Shown piece after piece: positions 23,673 through 51,255 of a stretch of DNA of 64,000 nt; the stretch's first letter is position 1, and every line of letters starts with the position of its first letter. Source of the stretch: Mytilus edulis (taxonomy: Eukaryota); NCBI RefSeq assembly GCF_963676685.1, contig NC_092348.1, positions 19,840,001 to 19,904,000 on the forward strand. Reading direction: 5' to 3'. The position numbers and the translations under genes are program-made. The notes beneath the pieces are model-generated. The model was given only the letters and a program-made list of their open reading frames with translations, did not search any database and was not told the origin of the DNA.

Positions 23673-26076
23673 ATGATCATGTTGTTTCACACAATTCTCG
23701 TAAGTTACACCAATATTTATTTAAAACAATAGGAAAAAATCTATATTCAGTGTTAGCACTTTATAAATGATACTATCAAAAATATTCATGTTTTCAAATA
23801 ATATTCGTTTTTCTTAATTCTTTTGCCTTACGCTTCACTTTACTTCATATACAAAGTGTATAAACTTAGTTATTCTAGCACATCTTTTAACTTTTGTTTT
23901 TTTCAATTTTACTCGATTGTTAGGCCTATGCTATCTCTTAAAATCAAAATTTGTAAAATGACAATCTTGTGTAATAAGATGGAACCATGCAATAAAACTA
24001 AAGTATAAAATGTATATATACATGTATATATATTTTTTCAAAGACGTCTTACGAAGTGTGTGTTGCTTTTCGACTAGAAGTGGTACGTAGTTCAAGTTCT
24101 GTTAGTTTTTTTTATCAAAATGTTTTACTGATGTTGTGTTAGTTGTTTACCTTATAAGTTGTTACAGTTCGTATTTTGTTTTAGTTTTTTTTACCAGTAA
24201 ACGTTTACGTATACGTAGGTTGTGTTAGTTTTGCTGTATAAATTTGTTGATGCTGAGGTTGCCGATCCTACAAGAATATGTACACCACCATTACCCGAAG
24301 ACGACGATTATTTTAAGGACTTAGAACAGGGAGATAAAGAAATAAGGTAAATGTCTTTGTAAGATAGGCTAGTGGAAGTTGGCTATTAAATTTGGTGGAG
24401 ACACTTTCAAATGAATATAATGGACTGCACAAGATTTTAATGCAACCAAAAAGCCTCATATTTTTTTCGGATTAACTATATGAATCTATGACAAACCAGA
24501 TTGATGTGAAAACGAATTTATGTTACTTTGATATATAATTATCATAAAGGTTGTATCTTTATCATTATCCTTATATTTATTGTTGAAATTTTATCTTTTA
24601 TTGTTTATATTTTAACTTTCATTGTCATCATTAGTGCTACATTTTTATTATCAAAAACGTGATTTTTGTCTGTAGTGTTTGCGTTTAAATTTTTATTTTG
24701 TATTTGTAGAGCTGAAATAAATAGAAGTTTAGATAGGGAAACAACGCTTAAGGTAGAAACAGATAGAGCTGTCAATGAGTTAATGTTTGAAGCTAATCCA
24801 GTGTAAGTTTTGATACTCTTGTATTGCAGTTAAGTTACCAAGCAAAGAAAAGATTTTAAAAAAATGAATAAAAAGTAAAATCACAAAAATACTGAACTCA
24901 GAGGAAAATCAATACGGAAAGTCGATAATCACATGGCAAAATCAAATAACAAAACGCATCAAAAACGAATAGACAAGAACTGTCATATTGTTGATGCTGA
25001 AGTTGCCGATCCTACAAGAATATGTACACCACCAATACCCGAAGACAACGATTATTTTAAGGACTTAGAACAGGGAGATAAAGAAATAAGGTAAATGTCT
25101 TTGTAAGATAGGCTAGTCGAAGTTGGCTATTAAATAAATGTAATACAATTATCCGTTTCAATATATAAAACAATACATCTAACGGTTACTGTCAAAGTAC
25201 CAGTTTGCTAAATTATTTTACAGGATAAAAAAAAACATGCAAATTGATGAATAAATATGCATTGCTACATAGATATTTTAATCAGGATTCAATTCTTTTT
25301 AATTTACATATTGAAGGAAGGATATCAATTGTTGATTTGTTTTCAGGTTTGTATGGACGGTTGGAATGTGTAAATATAAATACCTGTCTTACGTCCCTTC
25401 CAAACAAGTCTGGTACCAAGGGAAAATGTGTTATGTATTGCATTACTTCTGGTATCAAATCTGGAAATACTTGGATTGTCCGTAAGTACATGTATAACTT
25501 TTAATGTTTTTAGAACCAAAGTTACCTAGTCACGATCATTACATAACAGGGAGATAACTCTTTCAAAATCAACTGAATGTATTAATAACGTTCTATTAAA
25601 TTCTTTTCAATAAACAAAACTAGTGCTTGTCCAAACGTCTCTGTGACAGTGTGTTGTTCACGTTTTTTGAATATTATATGTTGTTGTCAGAAGGTCAAAG
25701 TAAATATTTTGTCAAAATTTAAAGAAAAAGAGCCAGATTAAATTTCGTCAAGGTGTATGGTACCACCTTCATTCTTTCAATAATGTACCATAAGGTCTCC
25801 AGCTATCTGTTTCCCCAATTTTGTCGAATTTATTTTAGTTTGATACTTATTACAATTTTTATGATTACTTTTTTGTTTCATTTCAGTAAGCAACTTTGCA
25901 GTCACGTTCCGTGTAATCAATGGACCCCATACGTGTACAGATGTGTTCCGTCTTGTAAGCGTTCCTTCTATATGTGGATAGCTTGTCCCACTGGTCACCA
26001 TAGTTTCCCGTATAAGTACATCAGAATAGAGAAAAGGTTACCACAATGTTGTGAATGTAAGAGATACAAGTGCTGA
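23673..26076 (+). CDS. Secreted Spaetzle-like cystine-knot protein, type A copy 1 (A1), 190 aa
   Basis: Exons 23673-23699, 24219-24346, 24710-24802, 25347-25481 and 25887-26076, all GT-AG (phases 0,2,2,2). Protein: MIMLFHTILVVLVLLYKFVDA|EVADPTRICTPPLPEDDDYFKDLEQGDKEIRAEINRSLDRETTLKVETDRAVNELMFEANPVFVWTVGMCKYKYLSYVPSKQVWYQGKMCYVLHYFWYQIWKYLDCPKQLCSHVPCNQWTPYVYRCVPSCKRSFYMWIACPTGHHSFPYKYIRIEKRLPQCCECKRYKC*. AATAAA at 26119. Exon lengths are identical in paralog A2. Confidence 0.9.
24988..25135 (+). pseudogene. Intronic partial copy of A1 exon 2 plus its donor site
   Basis: Near-identical to 24243-24391, keeps the GTAAAT donor at 25091 and lacks the acceptor. It follows a repeat fragment (~24860-24987) and is absent from the equivalent intron of A2. 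Confidence 0.9.
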
Positions 26077-27769
26077 AGATGTGAGAGCGAAAACCAGTTT
26101 TCATGAAAAATTAATGAAAATAAAATTTAAACATGTTAAAATCGTCTTATTATTTCTTAATACCTTAAAAAAGGATATATTCCACTATCTTAATATATTG
26201 ATTCGGAATTGTTGTATGACTCCCACTGAAACAACTATCCGTTTAAAGACCTAAGGAAAAGGATCTTAACAAAAACAGGTCACTGTATGCCTTTCAACAG
26301 TGCATCTAGCAAAAATCACATAGTAAAGTAACAAAGGCAGCATAAAAATATATACAGTTACAATAGAGATTATAAAGCGAGCCTGTTTTGTCATCTGTTA
26401 TGATAACAGATAAGTTTTAATTATCGAAGCCACAATCCTCTTTCACTCAATTGTGACATGATGAATTTGGCTTTTGAAGTACAATATTTCGGGTGCTATA
26501 TGTGGAGCATAATCTTCTAACTCTTCGGGAGCACCAATTGAGATAACCAAAATTATTGATGGAGTTCGGCTTGCTAAGCCTTCAGTTGTTTTAGGTTGTG
26601 ACTATTTTTTGGCCATGGCTTGGTCCGTGTGTTTTCAATTTATAAGTTTTGATTTTTTTTTTAATTTTTCTGCTCTTTTTTTCAATGTTGCATACTCTTA
26701 ATCCATAATCGAACTACTAAAATCAGCAAGCAAAATAAAGATGGTCATGCCGATCGTACATGTACTACACATGACGACATATTCAATCAACCAACAATTA
26801 ACCTAGCATTACAAGATGTGCCAAAGTTATCCAAATATTTTAAAAACAATTGCATTGTGAAGACTAACAGCATAATTTACAACAAAATGGTTACGAAAAT
26901 CAACTATGGCTGATATAAAGCCACGACAACCAGTGAACTAAAGGCACCATACTTGTATTTGGCATATAAACGAATGAGTTGGTGTTGAACAGGTTTTGTG
27001 ATCGCTTCACCCTCCTTTAACCTGAGACAAAACAATATCAACACTTCGTCACATTGACATTCGAAACAAGAGGTAAATACATACAAAATACAATCACATA
27101 CAATCATAGTGAAATAAGTAATAAAACAACTTAGAAATGAACTATATTATTAATTACTTTACTATATGATATTTTCGTTAACTTTGAAACGAATAAAGGA
27201 ACATTTTTAAGTACATTTATATTAACCAATGATAGTAGTCCTTTCATTTTTGATGCACTGGGATATTCAATATAGTATTTTAAACAGTGTGGTTACATCA
27301 CAACATAATAAAGAACAAACTTTCAAACTTAATCTAAAAGGGCTTAACTCATCAGATCAATACAAAGAAGAAAAACATCACAAAAAACAAATCGGACGTA
27401 GACGATATTTATACATACCCAACAACAAACAAAACACAAAGTACAGATCTAAAAGTATTCACTATTACTCACACCTAGTTCAAAGCCAATAACAACTTTA
27501 AAAAAACTTGTACAAGTATCAATCAACAAAGTTCAACTACTGATGAATTTATAATAAACACGTCATAAACATTCAGGGCAAAACACGACCTTGTGAAATA
27601 CCAAACTAAATGGTACAAATGTATCGACATATTGTATAGTACCGTTGAAAACAGTTGTATTGGAGTTTTTTTTATATGTATATTCTGAGACTTTTGTGTT
27701 ATAGTAGTCTCAGTTATATTGTAAACGGTGATTCGTTGTAATAGAACCTCCGGCAATTGTTTTTGTTCA

Positions 27770-28012
27770 GGGGCTATGGAAATTTTTTCTGGACACACTT
27801 TTTTTTCGCCTTCGGCAACAATATTTTTCTTTCAATTTTAGCATTATATATAGTGGTAGCTGAGGGTGAAACAAACAATTTTTTTTTCTCAGGGTCAAAA
27901 AACAAATTATTTTTTTTCTCCAAAAACTGGAAACAAACTTTTTTTTCGAAAAAAAAACCTAAAAACCACCTACCCCCCACCCCCCCACCCCCACCCCCCC
28001 CCCCCCCCCCCC
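27770..28012. repeat. Low-complexity MITE-like insert ending in a C-rich tract (27965-28012)
   Basis: T/A runs and a poly-C tract; not present in the right arm of the inverted duplication. Confidence 0.5.
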
Positions 28013-30357
28013 GGCGGATTTTGTACTTAGGAATATGTTTGTAAACGTTGTTTCTTTTAACGTTTGCTTTTTTTAAATAGTAAGCTTAGAAGTTACGAAG
28101 ATATACTCAGTTGTAAGCATACAAGTGCAGAAGGTTGGATTTTTTTTAATTCACCAACAACTAAATGTTTTTGATATTTTACCTTAAAATAGAATGATAA
28201 GATATTTTTAATTAACAATTGGTTCTAGAAATATTTTAAAACGTTGGAAGATACAATAGGTATGTCACATTAGCAGTCATAAACCGAAGAGGAACAAAAA
28301 ATGACCAGTATTTAATAAACAAAAGATAAACAAAAAGACAAACAAAAACTGCACAAAACTTGCCACAAGAAACCTGAGATCACCCCTAGTTTTTGGTGGG
28401 GTTCGTGTTGCTTAGTCTTTAGTTTTATATGATTGTTGTGTCGTCTGTAGTATTATTTGTCTGTTTGTTTTTTTTTTTGTTTGTTTTTGCCATGGCATTG
28501 TATATTTTCAATCTATGAGTTTGACTGTCCCTCTTGTATATTTCGCCCCTCTTTTACAGACTGAGAGGTATTAACCAAACTCAATTCGGAACGTATGGGC
28601 CCCATGCATGGTGATGCTTATAGCAAGTACACTGCCATTAACAAGTTGTGTCTGCCGATAACTCTAATAGAAGAACAGAGGACGGTTTTGTTTGAACGGA
28701 AAATATCTATTGCCATGTCTTGTCCATATGTTTTTATTAAGTTATGATTGCGTTTGTTATAGTTCCTATTCTTTCTACATTCAAAAATTTTAATTATATC
28801 TATAGCATCAGAGTTATAAATATATAATGATACTTCCAATTTACAAAAAAGGATATCTAGCATGTCTGTTAAATCTTTGAAAACATGATTTTAACTTCAT
28901 TATAGAAACAATTTAGTAAACTACCTTAGACCTTAACAATAAAATTCTGATATGAAACACATTCGGAGATCTGAGGAAATAGGAGGTATCAACTGGAATA
29001 AATGGTTAAATTAAGCGACCATTACACACAGAATCTGTATGTTAAGGTGTCTACCCCATTTTGAGGGGCAGGTGGAATATTTCTTCATAAGTATGTAAAG
29101 CTCACAATTGGTAAATTGAAATCATTTTTTTTTAAAGTGTGCATATTATTTTGACAAAGTATGACAAGAACAGATCCTTCTTTTTTCTGTATCTGATTCC
29201 TCTTTAATAACAGAATTCCAATATAGTTAAAGCTCAAATGTCAACTTGGTTTTTTTTCGTATTAATCTTTCAGTACCTGCAAATTCAACAAGTTTTATAT
29301 ATATATTTTTTTATTATTATTATTATTATTGTGTTTTTTCATCACTGAACTATAATTACAATTTAAAAGTCATATTCCTTTCATGTAGATGTCGACCTTC
29401 AAAGTATGTCTTTTGTTGTACAATATTATAGTAATAAATAAGAGGGGGGAGTAAATGACCTGGTCTGATAAGAGCTTCTAACGAATTACCTTGCATAAGA
29501 CAGGATAAAAATGAATAGTCTGCAACCAAAAATATGTACTAAAGCGGAAATAAAATTTCGCGAGGCGATGCCGCGGAAAAAATAAGCACGCGTAGCAACA
29601 GATGAATATAATTGATAATGAGCATAAAAGCCAAAATGTTAATTGATAACTAAATTCAATTCAAACAAAACACTTTTCTTTCAGAAATGCTTGTTTAACA
29701 AGCATGTTTGAAAGAAAAGTGTTCTGTTTGAATATATATAGTTTCAAGGGATGACTCCTAAGTAAAGGGAGCAAGTTATTAATCATCACCAGTCAGTTCG
29801 GCTTTTAGTTTTAAATGAAAGCAAGGAAACTATGAAAGTAACTTTTAAAAGTTAAAGAAGTTATCCCTTAAATTTGCAATATCCCCCTTTCTAAACAGGG
29901 AAAATATAACAAAAGGTCTGGAGTATGGTAGATAAATATTATGCTATAAATTATTTCTACATGTACTAGCTGACATAAACGAAAACAGAAAACTTGATGA
30001 TTGCAGAAAATTAACAATCTGCGACATCACAATCTGTTTACTTATTAAAATTAAGATATTAATAGAGACAAGCGTCACATCGTTCACAGCTTCGTATATA
30101 TTAAATATGTAAAAGGAAAAGTACACCAAGTATAGGATTGATTTTAAAGAGGCGTGTCTAAACGTAGCGAAATTGGTCTGTGAAAATTTTTTCTGATGAT
30201 CTTGTAAAGCCACGTGAAATCACGACTGTTTCCAACACAAGGGGAGTGAGTATCAAGAATACTTATTCAAACGGTATACGCCTACTCAATACGTGGTTGA
30301 GTTTTCTAACAACATAACTAGAAGTTGTTGGATTTTGATGTATTCAAGTTAACAACT

Positions 30358-33004
30358 ATGCATTATATTCTGGTAAGCAATATTTTTCAAGTTACATAGG
30401 AATTCTATGTTTGTATTCCAAAACAAATAAAGAAATTTCGCAAAGATACTGTTTTTGGCTTTTGAAAATTAAGTTAATGTTTCTTGTGACTTATTTCAAT
30501 CTTTATAAAGCTAGATTACTTTCAAAACCCTTACGCTTTTGTTCCGATTTTTAAGAGTGTTGTAATCCTGGTACCTTTGATAACTATTGTGTAATAAAAA
30601 AGGAACAGAAATTACGGAACCTCAATAGCCAATGGACAGTACAACATACCACCCTACTTCCCCGCAAAAAAAATGAAAGCAAAGACAAAAAAAAAAAACA
30701 ACAACACGTAGCATTTCAGTGAACACTTCAAAATTAAACAAGAACTAAAAATAAATAGCGTTTTAAGGGATCGCTTTAAAATCGTACAACAAGCAAGGCA
30801 TATTTTAGCGTCTTTTAAAGTAAATATTTGTTTTGGTGTTTTATTAATGTTGACTGCATTGTTTTAGTTTTTTGTTTGTTTTGCTTAATCTTTTATTTAA
30901 TCTGTTGTTAGAAATTTTTCAAGGAATACACATTGTTTTTAACCTGGTTTTTTTTTTTTACAAAATGTGAAAATCTTTTATTTTCTTTACTAGCTTTTAG
31001 TGTTGGCGGCTTTATCTTGCTATGCACAAGAGGATCAGTGTGATCCAAATGATGGAGACTGTTTTAGAGAGCCGTTTGCTGGTGTCATGACTGGCGAGGA
31101 TGACCATTGTCCGTAAGTATTTCACATCAATGAAAGTCGATTCATATTTTGAAGGGGGAAGGATGATTTTCAAATTAAGTTATCTGAAATTGGAAATGAC
31201 AAATAAAAGCAGCTGGATACAATAAAATACAGAAAACAACTATCGAAAATAGTTGGGCATAAAAGATAAAAACAAAGATTCGTTTTGGTAATATGGCTCG
31301 TTTGATTGGTGTGGTTTTAATATATTAAGTATGCAGTATTTGGAGAATGCATTGTTTTCACTAACAACAATTCGCATGTGATGTATAAATTACACTTTAA
31401 TTGATTAATTATTGTTCCAGGGTTGAAAAAATGCAAGCAACATTAGACAAAGATCCAGAGATAAAAGCTGAAGTCGAGGCTGCGAAATTAGCAATTGCTC
31501 ACTTGACAAAACCTCCTGTTTCTCCGTAAGTAAATTTGAAAACTAAATCAAATCCTAGTACTGTATGTACATGGCAAAATTCGACAGAAGCCGAGGCTCG
31601 AAAAGCTGAATATATATTGAATGTTGTGAACAAATACAAATAATGGCTTGGAAGAGAGAATTAAATTGAAGTTCGTAAATAAGCTCACCAACGTTTGTAT
31701 TTTGTAAATTTAATTCAATTCAATTTAAATTTATAAAAAATTTAAACGAATACATGGGAAATTTTTAGATCAGTAATATGACGTCCTTAATGTGTTTTGA
31801 AATATTCTATATATAACATGTATAATAATTTGTATCACGTTGTTTTCTTGTGAACGTTTTCGATTTCAAATCATCTGTTCTCATTGGCGTGTACATCACG
31901 TCTTCTGATGCTCATATTATTATATTTTTCGAAATATATTATGAGATTTCTAATAAAGCATTCACGAAAATGTATAGATTGTTCCGTCCGTTTGGTAATT
32001 ATAGTGACTGTCTAAGTTGAACTATGTACAGTTAAATAAATACTTCAACTAGTGTCTATGTATCAGCTGGTTAAAACTTCACTAAAATACTTATTTCGTT
32101 TTTAATATAGAGTTGATCTTGGAATTCCATTGTGTTACAAGACATATTCAATATTGAAAGTGCCTCCAAAAATATGGATAAAGAAGGGGTATTGTTATTT
32201 CCATTGGTATTATGTGAAAAGCCAAATAACCTATGTAAACTGTGGACAGTAAGTTATTTATTTTGTTAATGTTATACTATTCTTATTTTGCTGTTCGTAA
32301 TTTTATTGAAGAATCACTATAAAAGTAGGATCAAAATCTCAATGACACGCACTTCAATTTTATAGTATGAGAATTTATTACAATTTACTGATGCGATAGG
32401 AATTGTAGTGGTATATTTCAAGATCGGCTGCCATGCACGTGCATGATGAAATCCTGTCAAATATTAAAAAGAAGCATTCGATCCTTATATTTGCAATTTT
32501 ATACTACAAAAATAAAATTACGAGTTAAATCTGATTTTTTTCTATGCATTGTTGTGACGTTGTCTTGGAAGCATGTGATGCCATGTATGTTGATATTTGT
32601 ATGTACATGTATAATTTAGTAACGTTTCTCAATTCTTAATACGGACTCTTATGAAACATATCATACAGATAATTTTTAATTGTCGTTTTCAAACAACATA
32701 GTCTTTATGCTAGTAAAAAGAGAAAAAGAAGGGACAGGCATATCAGTTTCCCGGTATATCTCCAAATTAACCATATTATGTTCATCTATTTTTCAGCAAA
32801 CAACGCTGCAGCAATTTGCCATGTTCTATGCTGTGGTCCCCATCTTTCTGTTATCCTGCCAACTTCTTGTCACTGAAACTATACATGTTTTGTCCACATC
32901 TAAAACCGAAATACTGGTATCCATACTACGTCCGCCTTCCTCAGTGTTGTGAATGTAGGAGAACCTATTGTTGGTGGCTGCAAGCGCCCCAGAGTCCCAA
33001 ATGA
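30358..33004 (+). CDS. Secreted Spaetzle-like cystine-knot protein, type B copy 1 (B1), 194 aa
   Basis: Exons 30358-30372, 30994-31112, 31421-31525, 32111-32248 and 32797-33004, all GT-AG (phases 0,2,2,2, as in A). Protein: MHYILLLVLAALSCYA|QEDQCDPNDGDCFREPFAGVMTGEDDHCPVEKMQATLDKDPEIKAEVEAAKLAIAHLTKPPVSPVDLGIPLCYKTYSILKVPPKIWIKKGYCYFHWYYVKSQITYVNCGHKQRCSNLPCSMLWSPSFCYPANFLSLKLYMFCPHLKPKYWYPYYVRLPQCCECRRTYCWWLQAPQSPK*. AATAAA at 33034. Confidence 0.9.
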
Positions 33005-35786
33005 CCATTTATTCCTTAAGAAAGAATAGTTCTAATAAAAATGATCGTTTCCTGTAAACGTATTTGTTTATTCTGTTAGCCAACTTGTAAGTTATGTGTT
33101 GTTTACAATCATCGGTTCATTCTTAGTTTTATGGTATAGCAACAACATATTTTATACAGAATGAAAGATAATTAAGCGTGGAATAGCGAATCATTTTGCA
33201 CCGATACAAATAAAGCTTCAAATTAAGGATGTGATCAACGACACAAATATTATTAAACTTTTTTTTTAACTCAGCTATTAATAAATACATTGGTTATTGC
33301 ATGAATAGTGATGACAAATACATCTATCCTTGAAGTTCCTAGGATACATGATATATAGCACTGGAAATATAAAAATACACTCGGGTCAATATTCACCAAT
33401 TAAGTATTCATGCAATATTAACCCTTTTGTGATACAAAATTGAAGGGGGGATTTGTAATTGCATGGAAACTCTCAAAAAGCCATTATCAATAATACATTA
33501 TGTTAGTGTTTATATATTGGAACACAAGTATTTTTCAACGATTTCATTGGGCTATACACATGTTTCTGTAATTACAATTATCCGGAGCTAGGAATGAAAT
33601 GTTTGAAAAGTCAAATATAAAATTTGGTAGTTACAGGAAGATCACATCAGATAAAAAAGATTTTTAAAAATACTAGGTTCTGACTGCTTATCGTTCACTC
33701 TTTGATCCTGGTTCGTCATTGAATTCAAATCATTTATTTATTTGGTTATTTGTGCCGTTAAATTGAATTATAAATGATTTTGATCCTAAGCTATTCTTAA
33801 TCATTATATCCCTTTGTCCTGATACTTTTATATAGCTTGAAAAACTTTGGATTTTAATGTCAATAAGGTCAAGGTCACAGCAGCTATTGGAAGACTTAAA
33901 TGTTTGGCAATTTTTTAATTTCAAGATGTTAAAATTTGCTTCTCGAGTGACATTATTTGGAGAATATGTCAAAACTTCATCAAACCTATCTGAAGGATGC
34001 TCTTGAAAAGATCAGTATATTAAAGGTCAAAGTAACAGAACCTTTAAATATAACAAAACTTTGGGACAAGTCTTTCAGTTATATTCAGTTTTAAACCTAT
34101 CTCTTGTAAGTTCTTGATCTTGTGGTGAAAACGAGACCAATTGGTCAAATGTCAGCGCTACAACAGTAGTTCATTGCGAACAGAATAAGCTCCGTACAAA
34201 AATGTATTTCTAATACAAAACCACCAAGATTATATACCTTTCATGCTATAAAATATCTATGGATTTATCCATTTTTGCATGTTTGTAATATGTATAGAAA
34301 AGTGTATCAAATATTTCTGACAGGGCAAACGCACATTTAGAACATTAACATTTTTACCGTTTCGTGGTTTTAGGGTCAATAAAATATCATAGATTGCATT
34401 GAATAGTAGACAGACTTATGAATCTTTCTTCAAACGCTGACTATTGCAAGTGATAGAACTTTTACATATAAGGAGGGTGTTATATACTAGGAATACACAG
34501 GTTGAACTGTGAGATCATAATAACGCATGAAAGGGTTTGTACATTATATCAATAAATAGATGATACTTTAGACATCTTTCGTTTGATATAAATAAACGAT
34601 GCCAGGTATAAGACACACCAACTACTTACTATCATTCGATGTAAACTATGCTGCTTCGCTACCTTCAAGGTTATAGCCGCATAAGCTTGTGTTTAATATT
34701 TGTCAATAATATTTACATCGTAGAAAACAGGATTTTTTTTTCTTAAGAGGTCTTCTGTAAAAAGGTATTTTTTGAGTCCAATGGTTCTTACACGATATGA
34801 CAACTAACTGCTTTTATCAAATCTTCGTAAAGGTTATAAAAATTCTGGATCTGCCAACGAGCACATTTTACAACTCCTGGGTTTTGGAGGAGTTCTTGTA
34901 TCTAATTGTTTAGTGTCCATGTTTTGTCTGTGTGTGAACTATTGTTTGTTTTATCGTCCTTTTTCGTTTGCAGTTTTTTTTTGTCATGTCGTTGTCAGTT
35001 TGTTTCCGGTTTGTGAGTTGACTATTTAAGATATTGGAACAAAATATTCAATAATCAATGAACAAATAATATCAAGCTTATAACCCTTTTTATAAAGAGT
35101 GTCTGGTTTTTTTTCATTTAAGTTGTTTTATTTGTACATGTGGACGACAGAAGTGTACCTCTAACAGACTATTATAATCTTATGCAATAACATGTTTTAC
35201 CCCAACTTTCTGTTAGGTATCGTGTTACTCAATCTTGAGTATTTGGATTTTTGCTTTGTTTTGTTATTTGTTTCATTTTGTTCCAATGATATTGTTTGTC
35301 TTAATTCAACAAATGGTCTTATATAGAGCCTCTTTTAATCTTCTTTTTATACTTGTTATGATTAGTCGTTCATTTAAAGCCAAAGAGTGACTAAGAAATA
35401 GAAAAATGGTCACTGCATGTTTTCTTCTGACCGGCAATAAAACCCTTACCAAAGTGAGACGGTGGTTTTATGCGGAATGAACAAGTACGCAGCCACGTCA
35501 TATAGGGACGATTTATTCGTTGCCACGTTTAAACTGTTGTAACATCTCGCTGAATTCATTCTGATTTTAGTTTTTTAGAATTTTCCTCGGAGTTCAGTAT
35601 TTTTGTTATTGTAACTTGTTTACAAGCACTTCGGTTATTCGTAATCCTGCTTGTTAAGAAAAACAATTAATTCCCTTTGAATGACCTTTAAAAAATATAA
35701 AAATAAATAATCAAAATTTCATCTTCTACGGTGTTCGTTTCTTTCCCACAGAGTTCTTTTTAACTTGTTGACCTCTGGTCTCTGAT

Positions 35787-36198
35787 TGTCGGTTGTGTAC
35801 GGCTTACTTTTCTTGTCAGTGACCTACCCGAGCAGTACTGATGTCGGTAGTGTACCCTTACTTCTCTTGTCAGTGACCTACCCGAGCAGTACTGATGTCG
35901 GTTGTGTACCCTTACTTCTCTTGTCAGTGACCTACCTGAGCAGTACTGATGTCGGTTGTGTACGGCTTACTTTTCTTGTCAGTGACCTACCCGAGCAGTA
36001 CTGATGTCGGTAGTGTACCCTTACTTCTCTTGTCAGTGACCTACCCGAGCAGTACTGATGTCGGTTGTGTTCCGTTACTTCTCTTGTCAGTGACCTACCC
36101 GAGCAGTACTGATGTCGGTTGTGTTCCCTTACTTCTCTTGTCAGTGACCTACCCGAGCATTAATATTACTGATGTCGGTAGTGTACCCTTACTTCTCT
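35787..36198 (+). repeat. 54/55-bp minisatellite, ~7.5 units, with 163-bp higher-order period
   Basis: Unit TGTCGGTTGTGTACCCTTACTTCTCTTGTCAGTGACCTACCCGAGCAGTACTGA. The 55-54-54 pattern repeats twice, and the ORF starts 35786 and 35949 differ by 163. Confidence 0.95.
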
Positions 36199-39224: not shown

Positions 39225-39638
39225 TATGAGTTAAGCCTTTTTCAACTGATTTTTATAGTTCGTTCTTATGTTGTACTGTGATACCACTGTCCCAGGTTAG
39301 GGGAGGGTTGGGATCCCGTTAACATGTTCAACCCCGCCATATTATTTATGTATGTGCCTGTCCCAAGTCAGGAGCCCGTAATTCAGTGGTTGGCGTTTGT
39401 TTATGTGTTACATATTTGTTTTTCGTTCATTTTTTTACATAAATAAGGCCGTTAGTTTTCTCGTTTGAATTGTTTTACATCGTCTTATCGGGGCCTTTTA
39501 ATAGCTGACTATATGCGGTATGGGCTTTGCTCATTGTTGAAGGCCGTACGGTGACCTATAATTGTTAATGTTTGTGTCATTTTGGTCTTTTGTGGATAGT
39601 TGTCTCATTGGCAATCATACCACATCTTCTTTTTTATA
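39225..39638 (+). mobile_element. Interspersed repeat insertion (ending GTTGTCTCATTGGCAATCATACCACATCTTCTTTTTTATA)
   Basis: Interrupts the B' duplicate relative to 35320. Its 3' part recurs almost identically at 51716-51950. Confidence 0.8.
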
Positions 39639-40067: not shown

Positions 40068-40306
40068 AGTTATCAAAAGTACCAGGATTATAATTTAGTA
40101 CGCCAGACGCGCGTTTCGTCTACATAAGACTCATCAGTGACGCTCAAATCTAAATATTTATAAAGCCAAACAAGTACAAAGTTGAAGAGCATTGAGGATC
40201 CAAAACATCAAAAGTTGTGCCAAAGATGGCTAAGGAAATCTATGCCTGGGATAAGAAAATCCTTAGTTTTTTCTAAAAATTCAAAGTTTTGTAAACAGGA
40301 AATTTA
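40068..40306 (+). mobile_element. Interspersed repeat at the inner end of the right arm
   Basis: CGCCAGACGCGCGTTTCGTC...GTTGAAGAGCATTG family; related pieces at ~14310-14545 (+) and ~13530-13600 (-). Confidence 0.7.
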
Positions 40307-40851
40307 TCGGTGAAGAATAGTTTTGTTCCAAAATATTAAATAAGCACTAACATACTATATTATTGATAATGGCTTTTTGAGCGATCACATGCAATTACGA
40401 ACTTTCGATCCTTTTTTTATTGTATATGATCATAAAGGGGTTAATATTGCAGGAATATTGGTGAAAATTTACCCGAGTAAATTTTTATATTTCCAGTGCA
40501 ATATATACATTCTACGAAGGATACGTGTATTTGTCACCACTGTTCATGCATTAACTATCTTATTTAATAACAAAGATATAAAAAAAATGTTTTAAACATA
40601 TTCTTGTCTTTGATGACATCCTTGATTGGTAGTTTTATTTGCATCAATGCAAAATGATACTCGATTCCACGCTTACTTTTCTTTAATTCTGTATGAAATA
40701 TTTTGTTGCTTTACAACAAAACTGAGAATAAACCAATGATTGCAGACAACACATAACTTAAGAGTTGACTAATAGAATAAACAAATACGTTTACAGGAAA
40801 CGATCATTTTTATTACAACTATTCTTAAGGAATAAATGGTCCTCTGGGACT

Positions 40852-43622
40852 CTATGGCGCTTGCAGCCACCAACAATAGGTTCTCCTACATTCACAACAC
40901 TGAGGAAGGCGGACGTAGTAAGGATACCAGTATTTTGGTTTAAGATGTGGACAAAACATGTATAGTTTCAGTGACAAGAAGTTGGCAGGATAACAGAAAG
41001 ATGGGGACCACAGCATAGAACATGGCAAATTGCTGCAGCGTTGTTTGCTGAAAAATAGATGAATATAATATGGTTAATTTGGAGATATACCGGGAAACTG
41101 ATATGACTGTCCCTTCTTTTTCTCTTTTTACTAGCATAAAGACTATGATGTTTAAAATGACAATTAAAAAAGATCTGTATCATATGTTTCATAAGAATCC
41201 GTATTAGGAATTGCGAGACGTTACTAAATTATATATGTACATACAAATATCAACATACATGGCATCACGTGCTTGCAAAGACAACGTCACAACAATGCAT
41301 AGAAAAAGTCAGATTGAACTCGTAATTTTATTTTTGTAGTACAAAACTGCAATTTTGTATAAGGATCGAATGCTTCTTTATTATTTTTGACAGATTTTCA
41401 TTGTGCACGTGTTTGGCAGCCGATCTTGAAATATAACAATATCATTCCTATCGCATCAGTAAATTGTAATAAATTCGCATGGAAACACAACACTATAAAA
41501 CGGAAGTGCGTGTCATGTCAATAAAATTACGAACAGCAAAATTAGATTAACATTAACAAAATAAATAACTTACTGTCCACAGTTTACATAGGTTATTTGG
41601 CTTTTCACATAATACCAATGAAAATAACAATACCCCTTCTTTATCCATATTTTTGGAGGCACTTTTAATATTGAATATTTCTTGTAACACAATGGACTTC
41701 CAAGTTCAACTCTATATTAAAAAAGAAATAAGTATTTTAGTGAAATTTTTACCTGCTGATACACAGACACTAGTTGAAGTATTTATTTATCTGTACATAG
41801 TTCAACTTAGACAGTCACTATAATTAAAAATCGGACGGAACAATCTATACATTTTCGTGAATACTTTACTTGTGATTTTGGTGAAATTTGCACACAAAAC
41901 TAAATAAAATTTCTGGGTTATTTTCATCCGTTAAGTTCGTTGTTCACCTTTTCCCACTAAATCACCGATAAATACACACACTAGTAACTATCAATCCATG
42001 TATGTATGATGTAGACATTATACGTACTTTAAGTAGTGTTGAATTGTTTCCTTAGAACTCTCATAATGTATTTCTAAACATATCTTAATAATATGAGCAC
42101 CAGACGACGTGATGTGCACGCCAATGAGACGACATCTAAACAGATGATTTGAAATCAAAACATACACAAGAAAACAACGTTATACAAATTATTATATATG
42201 GAATATTTTAAAACATACTATCAAGGGCGCCATATTACTGATTTACAAATTTCCGATGTATTTGATTTTATTTATTATAAGTTTTAAATTGAATTGAATT
42301 GAAATTGAAAAATACAAACGTTGGTAAGCTTATATACGAACTTGAATTAAATTCTCTCTACCAAGCCATTATTTGTATTTGTTTACAACATTTAATATAT
42401 ATTCAGCTTCTCGAGCTTCGCCTCCTGCCGATTTTTGCCATGTACATGCAGTACTTGGATATAATTTAGTTTTCAAATTCACTTACGGAGAAACAGGAGG
42501 TTTTGTCAGGTGAGCAATCGCTAGTTTCGCAGCCTCGACTTCAGCCTTTATCTCTGGGTCTTTGTCTAATGTTGCTTGCATTTTTTCAACCCTGGAATAA
42601 TTAACGAAGTAAAGTGTTATTTATACATCACATGCGTATTGTTGTTTAGTGAAAAAAATGCATTCTGTAAATATTGTATACTGAATATCATAAAACCACA
42701 CCAATCAAACGAGCAAAATTACTACAACGAATTTGTCTTTTCATCTTTTAATGCCCAACTATTTTCGATAGTTGTTTTCTGTATTTATTATCCAGCTGCT
42801 TTTATTTGTCATTTGCAATTCAGATAATTTAATTTGAAAATCCTCCTTCTCCCTTCAAAATATGAACTGATGTGAAATACTTACGGACAATGGTCATCCT
42901 CGCCAGTCATGACACCAGCAAACGGCTCTCTAAAACAATCTCCATCATTTGGGTCACACTGGTCATCTTGTGCATAGCAAGATGAAGCCGCTAACACTAA
43001 AAGCTAGTAAAGAAAATAAAAGATTTTCACATTTTGTAAAAAAAAAACTTTAAAAAAAAACAAAGAGTATTCATTAAAAATTGTCTAACAACAGCTTAAA
43101 TAAAAGGTTCAGCAAAACAAACAAAAATCTAAAACAAAGCAGTCAACATTAATAAAACACAAAAACAAATATTCTCTTTAAAAGACGCTAAAATATGCGT
43201 TGCTTGTTGTACGATTTTAAAGTGATCCTTAAAATGCTTTTTATTGTAAAAAATGTTCTTGTTTAATCTTGAAATGTTCACTGAAATGCCACGTGTTGTT
43301 TTTGTTTTGGGGGTATTTTTTTTGTGTTTTTTTTTGTCGGGGAAGTAGGGTGGTATGTTGTATTGTCAATTAGTATATTGGGGTTCCGTAATTCCTGTTA
43401 CCCTTTTTCATTGCACAAGACTCTTAAAATCGAAACAAAAAACCTGCAAGTTGTCAAAGTTTTCTAGCTATATAAAGATCGCAATAAATAACAAAGCACA
43501 TTATTTCTTAATTTTCAAAAGCCAAAAACAGTATCTTTGCGATGTTTCTTTATTTGTTTTGGAATACAAACATAGAAATCATATGTAACTTGAAAAATAT
43601 TGCTTACCAGAATATAATGCAT
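40852..43622 (-). CDS. Secreted Spaetzle-like cystine-knot protein, type B copy 2 (B2), 190 aa
   Basis: Exons 43622-43608, 43003-42885, 42591-42487, 41711-41574 and 41047-40852; exons 1-4 have the same lengths as in B1 and all introns are GT-AG. Ends ...RLPQCCECRRTYCWWLQAP* (TAG). About 5 aa substitutions versus B1. Confidence 0.9.
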
Positions 43623-45736
43623 AGTTGTTAACTTTAAGTCATCAGAATCTAGCAACTTCTAGTTATGTTGTTAGAACGCTCCACCACGTATGGAGGAGGC
43701 GTATACTTTAAAATAAGTCTTATTTGATATTCACTCCTCTTATGTTCGGATATACTCGTGCTTTTACGTCATGTACATGGCTTTACAATCTCATTAGAGC
43801 AAAATTTCACAAACTAATTTCGACACGTTTAGACACGCCTACTTGGTGTACTTTTCTTTTTACATATTTCATATATACAAAGCTGTGAAAGATGTGTCTA
43901 TTAATATCTTAATTGTTATAGGGGAACATATTGTGATGTCGCAGATTGTTAATTTCTTACAATCATTAAGTTTTTTAGAATTTTTCTGTTAATGTCAGCT
44001 AGTACAATTAGAAATAATTTATAACATAATATAGTTTTACCATCCTCAAGATATTTTTGCTATATTTTTCCTGTTTAAAAAGGGGGAGGGATTGCAGATT
44101 CAACGGAAAAGTTCTTTAATTTTCTATTGTACTTACTTTCAACGTAAACTAAAAGACTGTTGATGTTTTTCAAACTTGCTCCCCTTACTTCGGAGTCACC
44201 CCTTGAATACCTCTCTCTATTTATATTCTTGTCAAACGAGCATATCTGTAAGCCTTAGTATTTTCTGTAATTTGGAGCTAGTCATCAATTAATATTTTTG
44301 TTTCTATATGAACCATAAGTTCATTTTCATCCTGTCTTACGCAAAGGTTACTCATGCTCAGCTCTTATCAGACCAGATCTTGCATTCCCGCCCCTACGGG
44401 AAATCAAATAATCGCACCTTAAATTTACACTGATACATTAATGTATCAATTTTAAACACAGTGATTTGGTTTGGAGGCAAATTACATCGAAAGTGGAAAT
44501 TATAAACAAAAATAAGGCCATTATAAATTAATGATTCTCTTTAACGAAGGGACGTTATGTTTTCATCCTTTATTTTGTAACTAGTTTCGAAGGAAATTTA
44601 TAGCGAAATAACGAAAATAGTATGTCTCTTTGATTTTTAAAAGCATGGAGGCCAATGACACTAGACATTTAAATATATATATATATATATTGAACAAATA
44701 ACAGAAATACGATAAAAAAAAACAAAAAAAAAAAACCAAACAAACAAACAAAAGCGCATGCAAGCGTTTTGAAATCATAAATCAATTAAATCCATTTCGT
44801 GGTAAATAGAAACAATCTGTACTTTTCAAGGTCGACATCAAGTTACATAAAAGGAAGATGTTTTTAAAAGTATAATAGTAAAGTGACGAAAAAAAATCCG
44901 CAAGAATAATAAACAAAAAAAAGATATAACTTGTTAAATTTGCAGATAATAAAAATTTAATACGGGGAAAAACAAGTTGACTTTTTAAATGAATCACAAT
45001 TTATTTTCGGATAAATTATTCAACTTTTCCAAACATTAGAAAATCGCCTTTTGCATTAACTATATTCAAATGTTGTTATTGAAGAGGAATCTGCTATGTT
45101 ATTCCTTTTCTTGTCATACTTCTTGTTCCATTCAATTAAAATAATATGCCAAAATCAAAATGATTTCAATTTTCCAATTGTAAGCTTTCCATATTTATGT
45201 TGAAATACTCCACCTGCACCTCCAAATAGGGCAGCTATCTCCAATATGATTGAAATTCCAATTATGTTTGTACTCGTCGCTTAAATATATTTATTCTTAT
45301 TCATTTTAAATTGATCAGATTGTAATACATTGTAACCCCTAGTTGTTAAACTATTCGAATTAAAATGTTTTAGATTAGAATTTCTTTGTTAATGTTTATT
45401 GTTAACATTTAGTTCACTATTTCTTCTCCATGGAAAAGTTAAAGTTCATGTCTCCAAAGGTTTAACAGACATGCTAAATTTCCTATTTTGTAATCAGAAC
45501 TCATGTTTGAATATCATACACAGCTATATTCCTAATTTTATGACTGTTAGTTGATACTTTTTAAATTTCATCAAAAGTGAATAGACATGAAAACATTATG
45601 TCTAGGATTTCTTAAACCTTTACTGAGAGGAATAATTTGATATTTGTTTGCTTTAAGATTTGTATATCTCAAGTCAAACGAAATGGGGGAAGGGATGTAG
45701 TATTGCATCTGTCCATCATAAAGTTAAAGTCTACCA

Positions 45737-46094
45737 GTTTAGTTTAAACACATTTATTTTAAGTGGATTATGAAACAAGTTATTGCAACTTATATTAATC
45801 CCTTTCCACTTTGCGGGTGCTAGTGCTGCCTTGTAGCGGAATTAGTATTCTCTTTTTCGAAATCTACAAGGGTGTCTTTTATGACATGAAAGAGATGTGA
45901 CTTTCTATCAACACGGGTAAGCCATTTATTATCTCCTTCCGACGGACTATCATCGTTTCTCAAGACCACACTCGCAAATGGTGTTGAGGGGGCACCGAAA
46001 ATTCGGTCCCTGGAATGTTCTCCACGGAACGGGTATCGAAACAAGATCATTGCGTTAGTAGTCCGATGCACTAATCACTACACCATGCCGCTCC
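45737..46094 (-). mobile_element. tRNA-derived SINE
   Basis: Minus-strand head GCGGCATGGTGTAGTGATTAGTGCATCGGACTACTAACGC...GTTTCGATACCCG (Pol III A and B boxes) and a TAAAC-type tail. A headless copy lies at ~50240-50488. Confidence 0.75.
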
Positions 46095-46666
46095 ATCGAT
46101 CTGTGGAAGTATAAGTTATAGTTCATGAAATTTTGTCTGAAATAACCGAGGGATCCTGAAAAAATAAGGTTATATTGACCTACAATTCACATATGAGTGA
46201 CTGATTGAAGTTCGATCGCGTTAGAGTCCATATCTGAGAAATAATGTTTTGGCAGTAATTGCGTCTGTAATAGTCAGAATCGAGGGTCCTAAAAATATTT
46301 CATCTTGGCATAAAGTTCATTGATGAGTAAATGAGGTGAAAGGTTGCGTTTAAGTCCATATCTGAGATGAAGAATACAATTTTGTCAGTAGATGCAAGTT
46401 GATAGTCATGAGTTTCAAAATCAAATCTTGAAAATGAATCAGATGATATTCTATTTCATCAACTGCACTCAAAAGATATTCGATTTCATCAACTACACAA
46501 TTAAGTTATATCTTATAGCTTATCATAACTTAATGTATTGGACCAGTTCTGTCAATTGAGGATGAAAATCAACTAAATATACAGATTGTTTATATAATAT
46601 TTGCACTTTTTTACACCAACAACCTCCATATTTCCGGCCCAAAAATTTGGTGAAGGAACCGATTAA

Positions 46667-47240
46667 GGGCATACGATACAGTTTTGATCCCGTGTTTAAA
46701 GTTTTATGAAAATTTCAGTATATGCTATTTTTTGCCTGATTAAATCAATTATGTAATAAAAAACATACCTTCATGTGCTACTTTTTTAGTTAAATGAGGT
46801 CGAAATTTTGTATATTTGCTAAAAATTCAGATTTGTGGCCGCTTTTTTTCCTTTCGAAAAAGAGACATAACCTTTTTTGTTTTAAAAGATAAACACAAAT
46901 TGTTTTTTGTTAAATAATTTGTAATTTCTGTATTTTATAAGTATCCTATACATTTATTCATTTTTTATTCAGAAATAACTCATATTTATCAAATGGTCAT
47001 GAATTGAGAAAAGAAAAAAAATTGCACTATTTACTGTCTTATAAAATTTGGTCCACATAATCTCCCTGCAAAATGAAACAAAATTTCTTTTAAAAAAAGG
47101 GGTCCATGCACTCGTTTCAAATTTAAATCAGTTCGAATTAAAAAAATTCAGTCGAAAAATGCACCTTTTTCCGGACGTCCCGAAAATTACATTTTACGTT
47201 AGCAACGTCATTATATCCCCTGTAACTGTTTCTTATGCCC
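46667..47240. mobile_element. Non-autonomous DNA transposon with TTAA target duplication (Kolobok-like)
   Basis: TTAA|GGGCATACGATACAGTT ... AACTGTTTCTTATGCCC|TTAA. Confidence 0.8.
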
Positions 47241-48800
47241 TTAACGCTCTTGTACAAAGAATATATATTCTTCTGAACAACACAATAGCCGGAAGTTCTA
47301 TAACAACTTCTCATCGTTTACAATATACATATAAAAAAAATCCAAATACAAAATATTCTCAACGGTACTACAATCTGTTGATACCATTTAGTTTGGTATT
47401 GCACAAGGTCGTGTTTTGCTCTGAAAGTTAATGACGTCTTTATTCTAAATTTATCGGTTGTTGGGACTTTGCTGATCGATACTTTTACAAGATTTTTTTA
47501 TAAGTCGTTATTGGCTTTGAACTAGTTGTCAATAACTGTATATACTCATAGATCTGTACTTTGTGTTTTGTTTGTTGTTGGGTATGTATAAATATCATGC
47601 CACGTCCGGTTTGGTTATTATGATGTTTTTCTGCTTTGTATCTAATAACAAAAGTATTGAACTCCGAGGAAAATTCAAAACGGAAAGTCCCTAATCAATG
47701 CAAATGACAAAATCAAACGATAAAACACATCAAACGAATGGACAACAACTGTCTTATTCCTGACTTGGTACAGTGATTTTCAAATGTAAAAAATGGTGTA
47801 TTGAACATATTTGCCACTGGACGTACGTTAATATATCTTAAGCCCTCTTAGATTAAGTTTAATAGTTTGTTCTTTATTATGTTTTGATGTAACACCACTG
47901 CCCCAGGTTAGAGGATGGTGAATCGATCACAAACCTGTCCAACCCTGATTCATTCTTTTATGTGCCAGGTACAAGTAGGGAGCCTGTTGGTCAATGGTTG
48001 CCGTTATTTCATATCAGCCATAGTTGTTTTTTGTAAATCATTTTGTTATTAATAATGCTGTTAGTCTTCACAAGTGAAATGTTTAATGTTTGTATAAATT
48101 TGGCATATCTTGGAATGCTAGGTTGATTAACGCCCATAAGCAAATATGTAACACATGTGTGGGACGATTGGTATGACTATCTTTATTTTGCTTGCTGATT
48201 TTGGTAGTTCGAGTATGGATTAAGAGTTTGCAACATTTAAAAAGGGGCAGAAAAAAATAAAAAAGGAACATTTAAACTCATAAGTTGAAAACAGAATGAC
48301 CAAGCCATGGCAAGAATATAATTACAACATAAAAAAAACTGAATACTTAGCAAGACGAACCCAATCAAAAACTTTGGTAATCTCAATTGGTGCTCTGGAA
48401 GAGTTCGAAAATTATTCTCCACATATGGCACCCGAAATATTGTTCTTCAAAGGTCAAATTCATTAATGTCACAATTGAGCGACAGAGGACAAAACTGTTG
48501 CTTCTAGAATTAAACTTATCTGTTATCATAGCAGATAACGAAACAGGCCCACCATATCATCTCTGCATATATTTGTATGCCTTTTATACTTTATGAGGCT
48601 TTGCGCTGCATTGTTAAAATGCATACAGTGACTTGTCATAATGTTTCAGTGGAAGTAATACGTTCTTCTTCGTATCAATAGACTAAGATACAATGCATTT
48701 CTTCTTTTGTTAAGGTATTCAAAAATTAAAAGCCGATTTTAACACGTTTAAATTATTTATTCATTAATTGACATGAAAACTGGTTTTGGCTCTCACATCT

Positions 48801-51255
48801 TCAGCACTTGTATCTTTTACATTCACAACATTGTGGTAACCTTTTCTCTATTCTGATGTACTTATACGGGAATCTACGGTCACCAGTTGGACAAGCTATC
48901 CACATATAAAAGGAGCGTTTACAAGATGGAACACATCGGTACACGTATGGGGTCCATTGATTACACGGAACGTTACTGCAACTTTGCTTACTGAAATGAA
49001 ACAAAAAGGTAATCATAAAAATTGCTCAGTATCATGTTAAAATGAATTCGAAAAAATGGGGGAAACAGATAGCTGGAGACCTAATGGGACATTATTGAAA
49101 GAATGAAGGTGGTACCATACACCTAGACTAAAATTAATTTGGTTGGTTTAAATTTCATCAATTTTGACAAAATATTTATTTTGACCCTTTCACAACAACA
49201 TACAATATTCAAAAAACTTGATCAACACATTTTATTGGAAAAATGTCATAGAGAAGTTTTGACAAGCACTAGTTTTAATCATTGAAAAGTTTTTATGCAT
49301 TTCCTTAACAATTAGAACGTGATTAATACGTTCAGTTGATTCTGACAGAGTTATCTCCCTGTTATGTAATGATAGAGACTGGTTATTTTGGTACTAACAA
49401 CATTAAAAGTTACACATGTACTTACGGACAATATACGTGTCTCCAGATTTGATACCAGAAGTAATGCAAGACATAACAACCATTCCCTTGGTACACGACT
49501 TTTTTGGAAGGTGCATAAGATCGGTATTTATATCTACACATTCCAACCGTCGATACAAACCTGAAAACAAATCAACAATTGATATCATCCATCAATATGT
49601 AAATAAAAAAAATAGAATCCTGATTAAAAATATCTAAAAAAGCAATCAACATTTATTCATCAATTTGCATGATAATTTTTTTTTATCCTGTAGAAATAAT
49701 TTAGCTAACTGGTACTTTGACAGTAACAGTTAACTGTATTGTTTTAAATATTGAATCGGATAATTTTATTACATTTATTAATTTTTTAACATTTGTCTTT
49801 ACTTAGTTAGTAACTTTTTAAACTGCAGTACAAGAGTATAAAAACTTACACTGGGTTAGCGTCAAACATTAACTCATTGACAGCTTTATCTGTTTCGACC
49901 TTAAGCATTGTGTCCCTATCTAAACCTTTCACTATTGCAGCTCTGAAAATACAAAAAAAAATGTATTTTGACACAAACACTACAGACAAACTTGATGTTT
50001 TTATAACAAAAATATAACACTAATGATGACAATGAAAGATGGAATATAAACAATAAAAGATCAAGTTTCAACAATAATCAGAAGGATAAGGATAAAGATG
50101 ATCTACAACCTTTATGATAATCATATTACAAATTAAAGTAATATAAATAAGTTTTCACATCAATCTGAGTTGTCAAAGATTCAACTATTTAATCAGAACA
50201 AACATAAGGCACATTTGGCCGCTTTAAAATCTTCTCGCTCTCCCTTGCCACCATTTGCTAGTATTGTCTTGAGAAATGATGACAGTACATCAGAATGGGG
50301 ACGTTAAATGGCTGAACCGTGTTATGAGAGAGCCATATCTCTTGCACGTAAAATACATCCTTGTAGATTTCGAAAAAGAGCAGGCTAATGCCGCTACAAG
50401 GCAGCACTCGCACTTGCAAAGTGGAAAGGGATTAAAATAAGATGCAAAATCTTGTTTCCCAATTCACTATTAATAAATAAACTAAACGTCAAATTTAACA
50501 GCCAAATTCCAATAGACTTTATATTATAAATTTATTTACCTTATGTTTTCATCTTTCTGCTCCAAGTCCCCAAAATAATCATCATCCTCAGGTGCTGGTG
50601 GTACACATATTCTTGTAGGGACGGAAACTTCAGCATCAACAGATTTATACAGGACAACTAACACAACCTACATAAAACTTTTTAATGAAAAACTAACACA
50701 AATTACGTAAAACATCTTTGTAAAAGACTAACATTCCATAAGTAAAAATTCAATGGCCAAAAATAAACAAGACCTTTGCAAAAATTCTATGGTCAAAAAC
50801 TAACACAACCTAGGTAACACTTCTAGTTGAAAACCAACACGAACTTCGTAAAAAATCTTTATAAATAAAAATACATTTGATACTATATAGTTACATTGCA
50901 TGGTTCCAACCTTGATACACAAGATTCGCATTCTGACAAATTATCTTTTTAAGAGATGGCATAGGCCAAAAATATAGTAAAATTGGAAATACACGAGTAA
51001 AATGCTTTGCTAGAATAAATGTATACATACTTGTAGTGTATATAACGCTTTGGTATTTAGATGACAAGCACACATCGCTTACAGTAAAATAAAGCGCATG
51101 GAAACGAATTGAGAAACACGCATATAGTTTTTTTTTAAATATGAGCATTTTTGATAGCATCTATAAAATGCAAACACTGTATATATTTATTTTTCGTATT
51201 GTTTTACATAAATATTGATGTAACTTACGATAATTTTGTGAAACAACATGATCAT
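48801..51255 (-). CDS. Secreted Spaetzle-like cystine-knot protein, type A copy 2 (A2), 190 aa
   Basis: Exons 51255-51229, 50667-50540, 49942-49850, 49560-49426 and 48990-48801, all GT-AG. Protein: MIMLFHKIIVVLVVLYKSVDA|EVSVPTRICVPPAPEDDDYFGDLEQKDENIRAAIVKGLDRDTMLKVETDKAVNELMFDANPVFVSTVGMCRYKYRSYAPSKKVVYQGNGCYVLHYFWYQIWRHVYCPKQSCSNVPCNQWTPYVYRCVPSCKRSFYMWIACPTGDRRFPYKYIRIEKRLPQCCECKRYKC*. Confidence 0.9.
50240..50488 (+). mobile_element. 5'-truncated SINE copy in A2 intron 2
   Basis: Reverse complement of the body and tail of 45737-46094; absent from A1 intron 2. Confidence 0.75.

Follow-up and report, generated by a model that had tools for sequence, protein, structure and literature searches.

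The 64-kb stretch of Mytilus edulis chromosome C5 considered here (19.84-19.90 Mb, G+C ~31%, no N), referred to below as the window and numbered from its first letter, carries four related genes of two types, A and B, and the question that this locus raises is what kind of protein they encode. Spaetzle, the arthropod ligand of Toll, has a seven-cysteine pattern in which ~35-36 residues separate two of the cysteines and a C-C-x-C motif, the first cysteine of whose pair makes the interchain bond, lies near the C-terminus. The answer favoured here, to which we give an even chance, is that the four genes encode divergent Spaetzle-like secreted cystine-knot proteins, likely acting as disulfide-stabilised dimeric extracellular ligands. 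The genes, with their exons in coding order and the lengths of their products in amino acids (aa), are as follows.

23673-26076, + strand, gene A1, 190 aa; exons 23673-23699, 24219-24346, 24710-24802, 25347-25481, 25887-26076
30358-33004, + strand, gene B1, 194 aa; exons 30358-30372, 30994-31112, 31421-31525, 32111-32248, 32797-33004
40852-43622, - strand, gene B2, 190 aa; exons 43608-43622, 42885-43003, 42487-42591, 41574-41711, 40852-41047
48801-51255, - strand, gene A2, 190 aa; exons 51229-51255, 50540-50667, 49850-49942, 49426-49560, 48801-48990

These models were obtained by reading the DNA directly and mapping exons between the two arms of a duplication described further on. An earlier note on this DNA had proposed four intact five-exon genes with canonical splice sites, and over the same span all four open reading frames (ORFs) proved intact, each in five exons, with every intron GT-AG and in phases 0,2,2,2. 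A2 aligns with A1, and B2 with B1, exon by exon without gaps and with GT-AG retained. The description of the cluster as hidden did not hold, as RefSeq annotates all four genes as uncharacterized proteins, and a script comparison found the four spliced models to equal these M. edulis entries in every letter: A1 is P0040 (XP_071171957.1), A2 is P0001, B1 is P0034 (XP_071176824.1), and B2 is P0033 (XP_071173071.1), the last identical also to M. galloprovincialis VDI25754.1. The first full-length Mytilus proteins had been found by searching with the A1 terminal exon and the others by cluster look-up; full-length searches, folds and complex prediction were all made on RefSeq proteins identical to the models.

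Evidence from RNA and from substitution patterns indicates that these are working genes. Roughly 10% of the words of 23600-33100 are present in 14 runs guessed to be RNA, a share similar to that of exons in the stretch. RNA contigs from three runs (X1, X2 and X3, each from a different study) were compared over 25300-31299, and the intron-4 joint of A1 (25481 to 25887, GT..AG) was found in contigs of all three studies, together with a loose contig end at 25347, the end of A1 exon 3 (exon 3-4 junction), and loose ends at 30993 and 31113 that match where B1 exon 1 stops and exon 3 starts (junctions 1-2 and 2-3). Outside repeats, contig depth in this interval is confined to exons, and at B1 to exon 2; A1 and B1 are transcribed in the same runs. 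A raw-read RNA run filed under another species label (X24) yielded no reads on the exons. Between A1 and B1, positions 27700-28700 show very high depth in all RNA runs, reaching ~32,000 in X1, and many variant contigs, and this segment probably represents transcription from a mobile element or a high-copy repeat. The A and B genes are under purifying selection, with a ratio of nonsynonymous to synonymous substitution rates (dN/dS) of 0.09 for B1/B2 and 0.45 for A1/A2, the latter composed of 0.62 for the N-terminal part and 0.33 for the knot domain; exon 2 of the A genes has diverged more than their introns. That the four genes might be pseudogenes or chance chains of ORFs, and their cystine-knot likeness a coincidence of cysteine-rich sequence, is scarcely credible. 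Relics do occur in the window, namely an orphan exon at 36670-36876 and a partial exon 2 copy at 24981-25092, but the ORFs and splice sites of all four genes are in order, spliced transcripts come from three studies, dN/dS is below one, orthologues exist in five Mytilus species, and the structural model described below is confident in the domain. Selection, RNA contigs and identity with the RefSeq proteins together refute this explanation.

All members of the family are built alike: the N-terminus is hydrophobic, the N-terminal region contains a single cysteine conserved family-wide, and a cysteine-rich C-terminal domain follows. The N-terminal region is acidic (isoelectric point, pI, ~4.2) and largely helical, and in most subfamilies contains a conserved Y-P-x-x-x-I stretch. 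The C-terminal domain is basic (pI ~9.3-9.5), with 12-13% Tyr, ~10% Lys and ~21% aromatic residues, and follows the pattern C-x19-C-[YW]-[VI]-L-x2-W-W...C-x4/5-C...C-x-P...C-P...L-P-Q-C-C-x-C. The RLPQCCEC motif, which the earlier note had ascribed to A and B alike together with a signal peptide, is found in all four window genes, as is a hydrophobic N-terminus. Ten cysteines are conserved across the A and B core, in addition to the one in the N-terminal region, and the mature proteins contain 13 (A, an odd count) and 14 (B) in total, with a ring segment of C-x4-C in A and C-x5-C in B. In a scallop protein of the family the cysteine following the ring and the first of the C-C pair are missing, while the N-terminal and C-terminal cysteines are kept; it is from such patterns of presence and absence among members that a putative free cysteine would be picked out.

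Structure prediction narrows the possible identity of this domain considerably. An AlphaFold2 (AF2) run on a six-sequence alignment was too poor for use, with a predicted local distance difference test score (pLDDT) of 46, whereas a 20-sequence alignment gave a model of B1 with a mean pLDDT of 75.6. In this model the domain scores ~85-93, and two N-terminal helices, placed by the prediction against the knot, score above 90. The top Foldseek matches of this model are NT-3, sclerostin, NGF, IL-17A and Spaetzle, at E-values of 0.012-0.1, the best being NT-3 (1b8k, E 0.012, TM-score 0.62 on the target). A wide structure search with the same model returned 37 solved chains at Z>=2, 36 of them cystine-knot growth factors, led by Noggin (Z 5.9) and coagulogen (5.8), which both align the N-terminal helices too, with NGF and Spaetzle at 4.7; a second structural comparison gave Noggin 6.0, coagulogen 5.5, Spaetzle 4bv4_M 5.0, and IL-17A and NT-3 4.9 each. 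Individual alignments differ in extent. Spaetzle 4bv4_M aligns over 66 residues (Z 5.0, root-mean-square deviation, rmsd, 2.6), with Spaetzle 3e07_A at Z 4.7; Noggin 1m4u_A aligns over 115 (Z 6.0, rmsd 4.4) and, like Noggin 7ag0_A (Z 5.9), covers model residues 26-181; of the coagulogen chains, 1aoc_B aligns over 140 residues (Z 5.8) and 1aoc_A over 134 (Z 5.5). IL-17A and NGF score 4.5-4.9. Because structural matches fall almost exclusively within the cystine-knot superfamily, the growth-factor cystine-knot class of the modelled C-terminal domain can be taken as established, and the Spaetzle/neurotrophin/coagulogen-type knot surmised by the earlier note from cysteine spacing is thereby upheld. 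The nearest family within this class is not distinguishable from the modelled structure alone. Neurotrophins (PF00243) and IL-17 (PF06083), for instance, have the fold class in common with the mussel proteins, which match neither family in Pfam.

The prominence of Noggin in these comparisons brings up a different function, in which the proteins would be extracellular antagonists of the Noggin/sclerostin/DAN kind, the knot and an N-terminal clip sequestering a ligand such as a bone morphogenetic protein (BMP) or a Wnt co-receptor partner. Noggin attains its highest structural scores (Z 5.9-6.0) once the N-terminal helical region is included, the best sequence match in the PDB is the C-terminal half of sclerostin at E 0.1, and one distant paralogue exon matches Pfam DAN at E 0.04. 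By alignment reading, eight core cysteines fit the DAN/sclerostin pattern, with an identical x13 spacing between two of them, and sclerostin aligns with the family along C..P..Y(K/R)....C-P.......(V)(R/K)L...C-x-C-K-R. However, the Z-score of Noggin is within 1 unit of those of Spaetzle, NGF and IL-17, no member matches Pfam Noggin or Sclerostin, and the ring is C-x4/5-C instead of the C-x-G-x-C of DAN and sclerostin. BMP and Wnt antagonists are moreover usually single-copy and conserved, and Noggin and DAN genes conserved and low-copy, whereas the mussel family is lineage-specific and expanded into arrays of ~30. We consider an antagonist function quite unlikely.

What points to Spaetzle in particular is a combination of sequence signals from paralogues and overall architecture. 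Spaetzle (PF16077) is the only Pfam family to recur among the 20 aligned members, in five of them. P0041 scores best, with 24.7 bits at E 3.7e-5, followed by P0030 at 6e-4, P0016 at 1.3e-3 and P0013/P0022 at ~0.3. The match of P0041, like those of the E-type paralogues (19.8-24.7 bits), extends from position 3 to 95 of the 96 in the model; D-type paralogues score ~12 bits, and all of these matches lie below the 27-bit cut-off. The nearest neighbours in ESM-feature space are Spaetzle clusters for both A2 (0.90) and B1 (0.92), accounting for 14 of 30 matches in the latter case. Pfam Noggin (PF05806), NGF (PF00243), Coagulin (PF02035), IL17 (PF06083), DAN (PF03045) and sclerostin (PF05463) gave no match in the 20 members. 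Since the PF16077 matches of the paralogues span the whole model, albeit under the cut-off, and the ESM-feature neighbours concur, the specific pointer to Spaetzle gains some support at the sequence level. Spaetzle also resembles A and B in being secreted, as A and B are predicted to be, in having an N-terminal region followed by a C-terminal knot, and in its C-C-x-C near the end. The cysteine-spacing argument of the earlier note fared less evenly. The 35 residues that it counted between two cysteines are exact (Cys91-Cys127 in A, Cys88-Cys124 in B) and of the Spaetzle type, but the count skips two conserved cysteines (A111/B108 and A137/B135), so that the match to the seven-cysteine pattern of Spaetzle is a selective one.

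Several observations weigh against a Spaetzle assignment. The structural Z-scores are modest, with a maximum of 6.0, and nearly tied, so that Spaetzle is not separable from Noggin, coagulogen, NGF, IL-17 or DAN. Neither a Pfam scan of the eight A/B exon peptides, which gave nothing relevant, nor one of full-length A and B at E<=10 produced a match, leaving of the Pfam check suggested earlier only the recurrent paralogue signal, and every PF16077 match of that signal misses the cut-off. The best PDB sequence match, as mentioned, is sclerostin and not Spaetzle; searches of the PDB with three profiles returned no Spaetzle, NGF, Noggin or coagulogen, and sclerostin only, at E 0.1-0.9. Spaetzle has seven cysteines, as opposed to ten conserved in the mussel core with a further one in the N-terminal region. 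Where the N-terminal region borders on the knot, the family alignment shows neither an Arg/Lys nor a dibasic site that is conserved, and for want of such a basic cleavage site a protease-activated pro-ligand of the Spaetzle kind is not supported. In Spaetzle itself a clip-domain protease removes the pro-domain at a defined basic site, and in the mussel proteins the N-terminal helices are predicted to be packed on the knot. The unusual abundance of Tyr, Trp and Lys in the domain and the tandem arrays of the genes are also compatible with effector or structural proteins. We therefore file the family within the cystine-knot cytokine superfamily as a divergent branch that is Spaetzle-like but not strictly a member of PF16077.

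When the genome was searched in six frames with PF16077, a neurotrophin locus was the sole match and no gene of the A/B family came up, a negative result that is weak since introns split the domain. The locus in question (L001, C10:22367283-22370576, ORF 1108-1854, + strand) is a single exon of 248 aa with a basic run and RSKR preceding an NGF-family domain (PF00243 at E 6.4e-23, Spaetzle at 20 bits), by its sequence a clear mussel neurotrophin gene. A relationship between it and the A/B family was considered and rejected, as hhalign of the family alignment against it gave a probability of 0.1.

The reach of the family bears on all of these readings. A profile built from A and B found nine matches only among 1.84 billion representative proteins, namely other subfamilies from Mytilus, a single protein from a scallop and a few fragments, and all named matches belong to Mytilus or Mizuhopecten, in keeping with the earlier suggestion of a lineage-specific family. 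With this A+B-only profile the paralogues P0012, P0013 and P0016 gave E-values of 1.6e-20, 1.5e-13 and 4e-5, respectively, which ties the subfamilies showing the PF16077 signal firmly to A and B. The principal matches are listed below.

P0012/P0020 type, a subfamily of 208 aa
P0013/P0022 type, a subfamily of 180 aa
P0016 type, a subfamily of ~220 aa
XP_021364070.1, the scallop member, from Mizuhopecten yessoensis

As far as sequence searches have seen, the family is thus confined to Mytilus, with orthologues in five species, and a scallop, a distribution in which it differs from Spaetzle. A profile search of the M. edulis genome located ~30 terminal exons of the family, distributed over five chromosomes.

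C5, 7 terminal exons: three A+B modules and the orphan exon
C12, 14 terminal exons: seven two-gene modules of two other types, 16.378-16.614 Mb
C7, 6 terminal exons
C8, 2 terminal exons
C10, 1 terminal exon

On C5 a third A+B module (A3, P0003, and B3, P0007) lies ~36-48 kb upstream of the window with its order unchanged, and A and B also share one contig in M. galloprovincialis, so the proposal that the two types are kept together as a module stands, with three pairs on this chromosome. On C12 (16377752-16614488) a module of one P0013-type and one P0020-type gene occurs seven times, its terminal exons alternating between - and + every ~28-45 kb. A FastTree phylogeny places A and B as sister clades (support 0.93), from which it follows that they arose by local duplication, the pair later being copied as a unit; orthology of the two-type C12 module with the A/B split was also entertained, and the same tree does not support it. 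Among divergent members, the C8 pair (L004/L005) ends in LPQCCFC, and the terminal exon of the C10 member (L006, C10:28746001-28749000, ORF 1331-1615, - strand) ends in IPTACSC and scores about equally with Pfam Spaetzle (E 0.026) and DAN (E 0.04), this being the paralogue exon with the DAN match cited above.

Such expansion, combined with the composition of the domain, is what one could expect of effector or structural proteins, whether coagulogen-like clotting factors, adhesive, byssal or shell-matrix components, or cationic antimicrobials in which the acidic region masks the basic domain. Coagulogen is of similar length to A and B (175 aa), aligns over nearly the whole chain at Z 5.5-5.8, and is built of an N-terminal piece tethered to the cystine-knot body with a helical segment between. 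An acidic N-terminal region joined to a basic domain rich in Tyr, Lys and aromatics, the large tandem expansions (~30 terminal exons, seven C12 two-gene modules), an evolution of A that is relaxed or diversifying (dN/dS 0.45, exon 2 more diverged than introns) and the high depth of exon contigs, ~150-450 in X2 and X3, all agree with such a role, although contig depth is a poor measure of expression. On the other hand, coagulogen shows no sequence-level match, the family has no Pfam Coagulin match and no conserved cleavage sites flank the helical segment in the mussel proteins. No member was found, by accession or motif, in the text of papers on mussel foot, byssus or shell proteins, and the strong constraint on B, identical in M. 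edulis and M. galloprovincialis, suits a specific partner better than a bulk material. An effector or structural role is accordingly rated unlikely, while still deserving attention.

If the proteins are indeed divergent Spaetzle-like ligands, the following mechanism may be envisaged. The ~190-aa products, each with a signal peptide, would be secreted, and the conserved cysteine of the N-terminal region would tether the acidic helical region to the knot domain, a connection suggested by which cysteines co-occur across subfamilies. Knot domains may then pair into disulfide-stabilised dimers (A-A, B-B or A-B, on a putative disulfide map), which would serve as extracellular ligands and, as Spaetzle, neurotrophins and IL-17 do, engage a receptor at the cell surface. 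One candidate class is that of the Toll-like receptors, which are expanded in mussels. Prediction of a complex of mature A2 with mature B1 by ESMFold2 returned a score of 0.60, compared with 0.00 for three controls, and was reported as weak support. In the benchmark of this procedure 51 of 78 solved complexes passed, as did 2 of 108 mismatched pairs, and passing scores no higher than 0.60 comprised only 5 of the 78 solved complexes and all four mismatches that passed. Across the A2+B1 runs contact agreement was at least 82% and the pLDDT of the partner at least 67. The odd cysteine count of mature A (13) likewise speaks for a dimer. Since A is a paralogue of B, the prediction fits dimerisation in general and does not tell a heterodimer from a homodimer. 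In a more elaborate form of the proposal, the A/B and C12 two-type pairs would make heterodimeric Spaetzle-like cytokines serving as endogenous ligands of some of the expanded bivalve Toll-like receptors, and this we regard as quite unlikely.

The arrangement of the four genes reflects a history of duplication within the window. A self-BLAST comparison aligned 23264-33542 with 51656-40306 in reverse orientation at 75-86% identity, and a self-comparison uncovered a tandem duplication (32344-35354 to 36239-39260, 87% identity) that has left a further copy of the B terminal exon. The order along the window is A1 and B1 forward, the orphan B exon 5 forward, then B2 and A2 in reverse. The earlier note had listed neither this inverted layout nor the orphan exon and the partial exon 2 copy.

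23264-33542, left arm of the inverted segmental duplication, containing A1 and B1 (self-BLAST)
40306-51656, right arm of the inverted segmental duplication, containing B2 and A2 (self-BLAST)
36670-36876, + strand, orphan fifth copy of the B terminal exon (B'), inside the tandem duplication, aligned with exon 5 of B1 and B2
~24981-25092, + strand, partial copy of A1 exon 2 in A1 intron 3, without an acceptor AG (sequence reading)

The B' exon has kept its acceptor AG, has one Cys changed to Ser and runs into an early stop after RRTYS, and the upstream B exons were not copied in the tandem duplication that holds it; it may be a remnant, or else serve B1 as an alternative last exon. The partial exon 2 copy is skipped, RNA contigs connecting A1 exon 3 straight to exon 4. 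Other repeats in the window include tandem arrays at 35782-36198 (period 54, 7.6 copies, 92% matches) and 60339-61276 (period 161, 5.8 copies, 90% matches), and an inverted repeated piece, 79% identical and with an open frame in both copies, of which one copy (50249-50487) sits in A2 intron 2 and its partner (45737-45983) between B2 and A2. A neighbouring gene on the - strand (10857-13285) has two exons encoding NIT, HNOBA and guanylate/adenylate cyclase catalytic domains (PF08376, nitrate/nitrite-sensing, E 6e-21; PF07701; PF00211, E 5e-17), and these domains suggest a receptor-type cyclase whose sensor domain is unusual.

Among the papers open to search, none gives these accessions or motifs, and further queries found no description of the family, which thus looks undescribed, its genes being already present in RefSeq and its kind, that of a secreted cystine-knot protein, being known. 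Bivalves have the largest known Toll-like receptor repertoires (PMC10279657), and according to a 2020 study of mussels, Spaetzle homologues were undescribed beyond the arthropods, bar one report from a clam (PMC7773633). Against this background, exact gene models, protein identifiers and a structural model are now in place for a transcribed, ~30-gene Spaetzle-like family of Mytilus, and the matter of protein ligands for mussel Tolls becomes a question for a direct binding experiment. Should the Toll-ligand reading be true, a Toll system gated by cytokines would exist beyond the arthropods, its diversity having come from the duplication of whole ligand pairs; should the proteins be antagonists, structural proteins or effectors instead, they would represent a new use of the cystine-knot scaffold in an organism well studied in aquaculture and biomaterials research.

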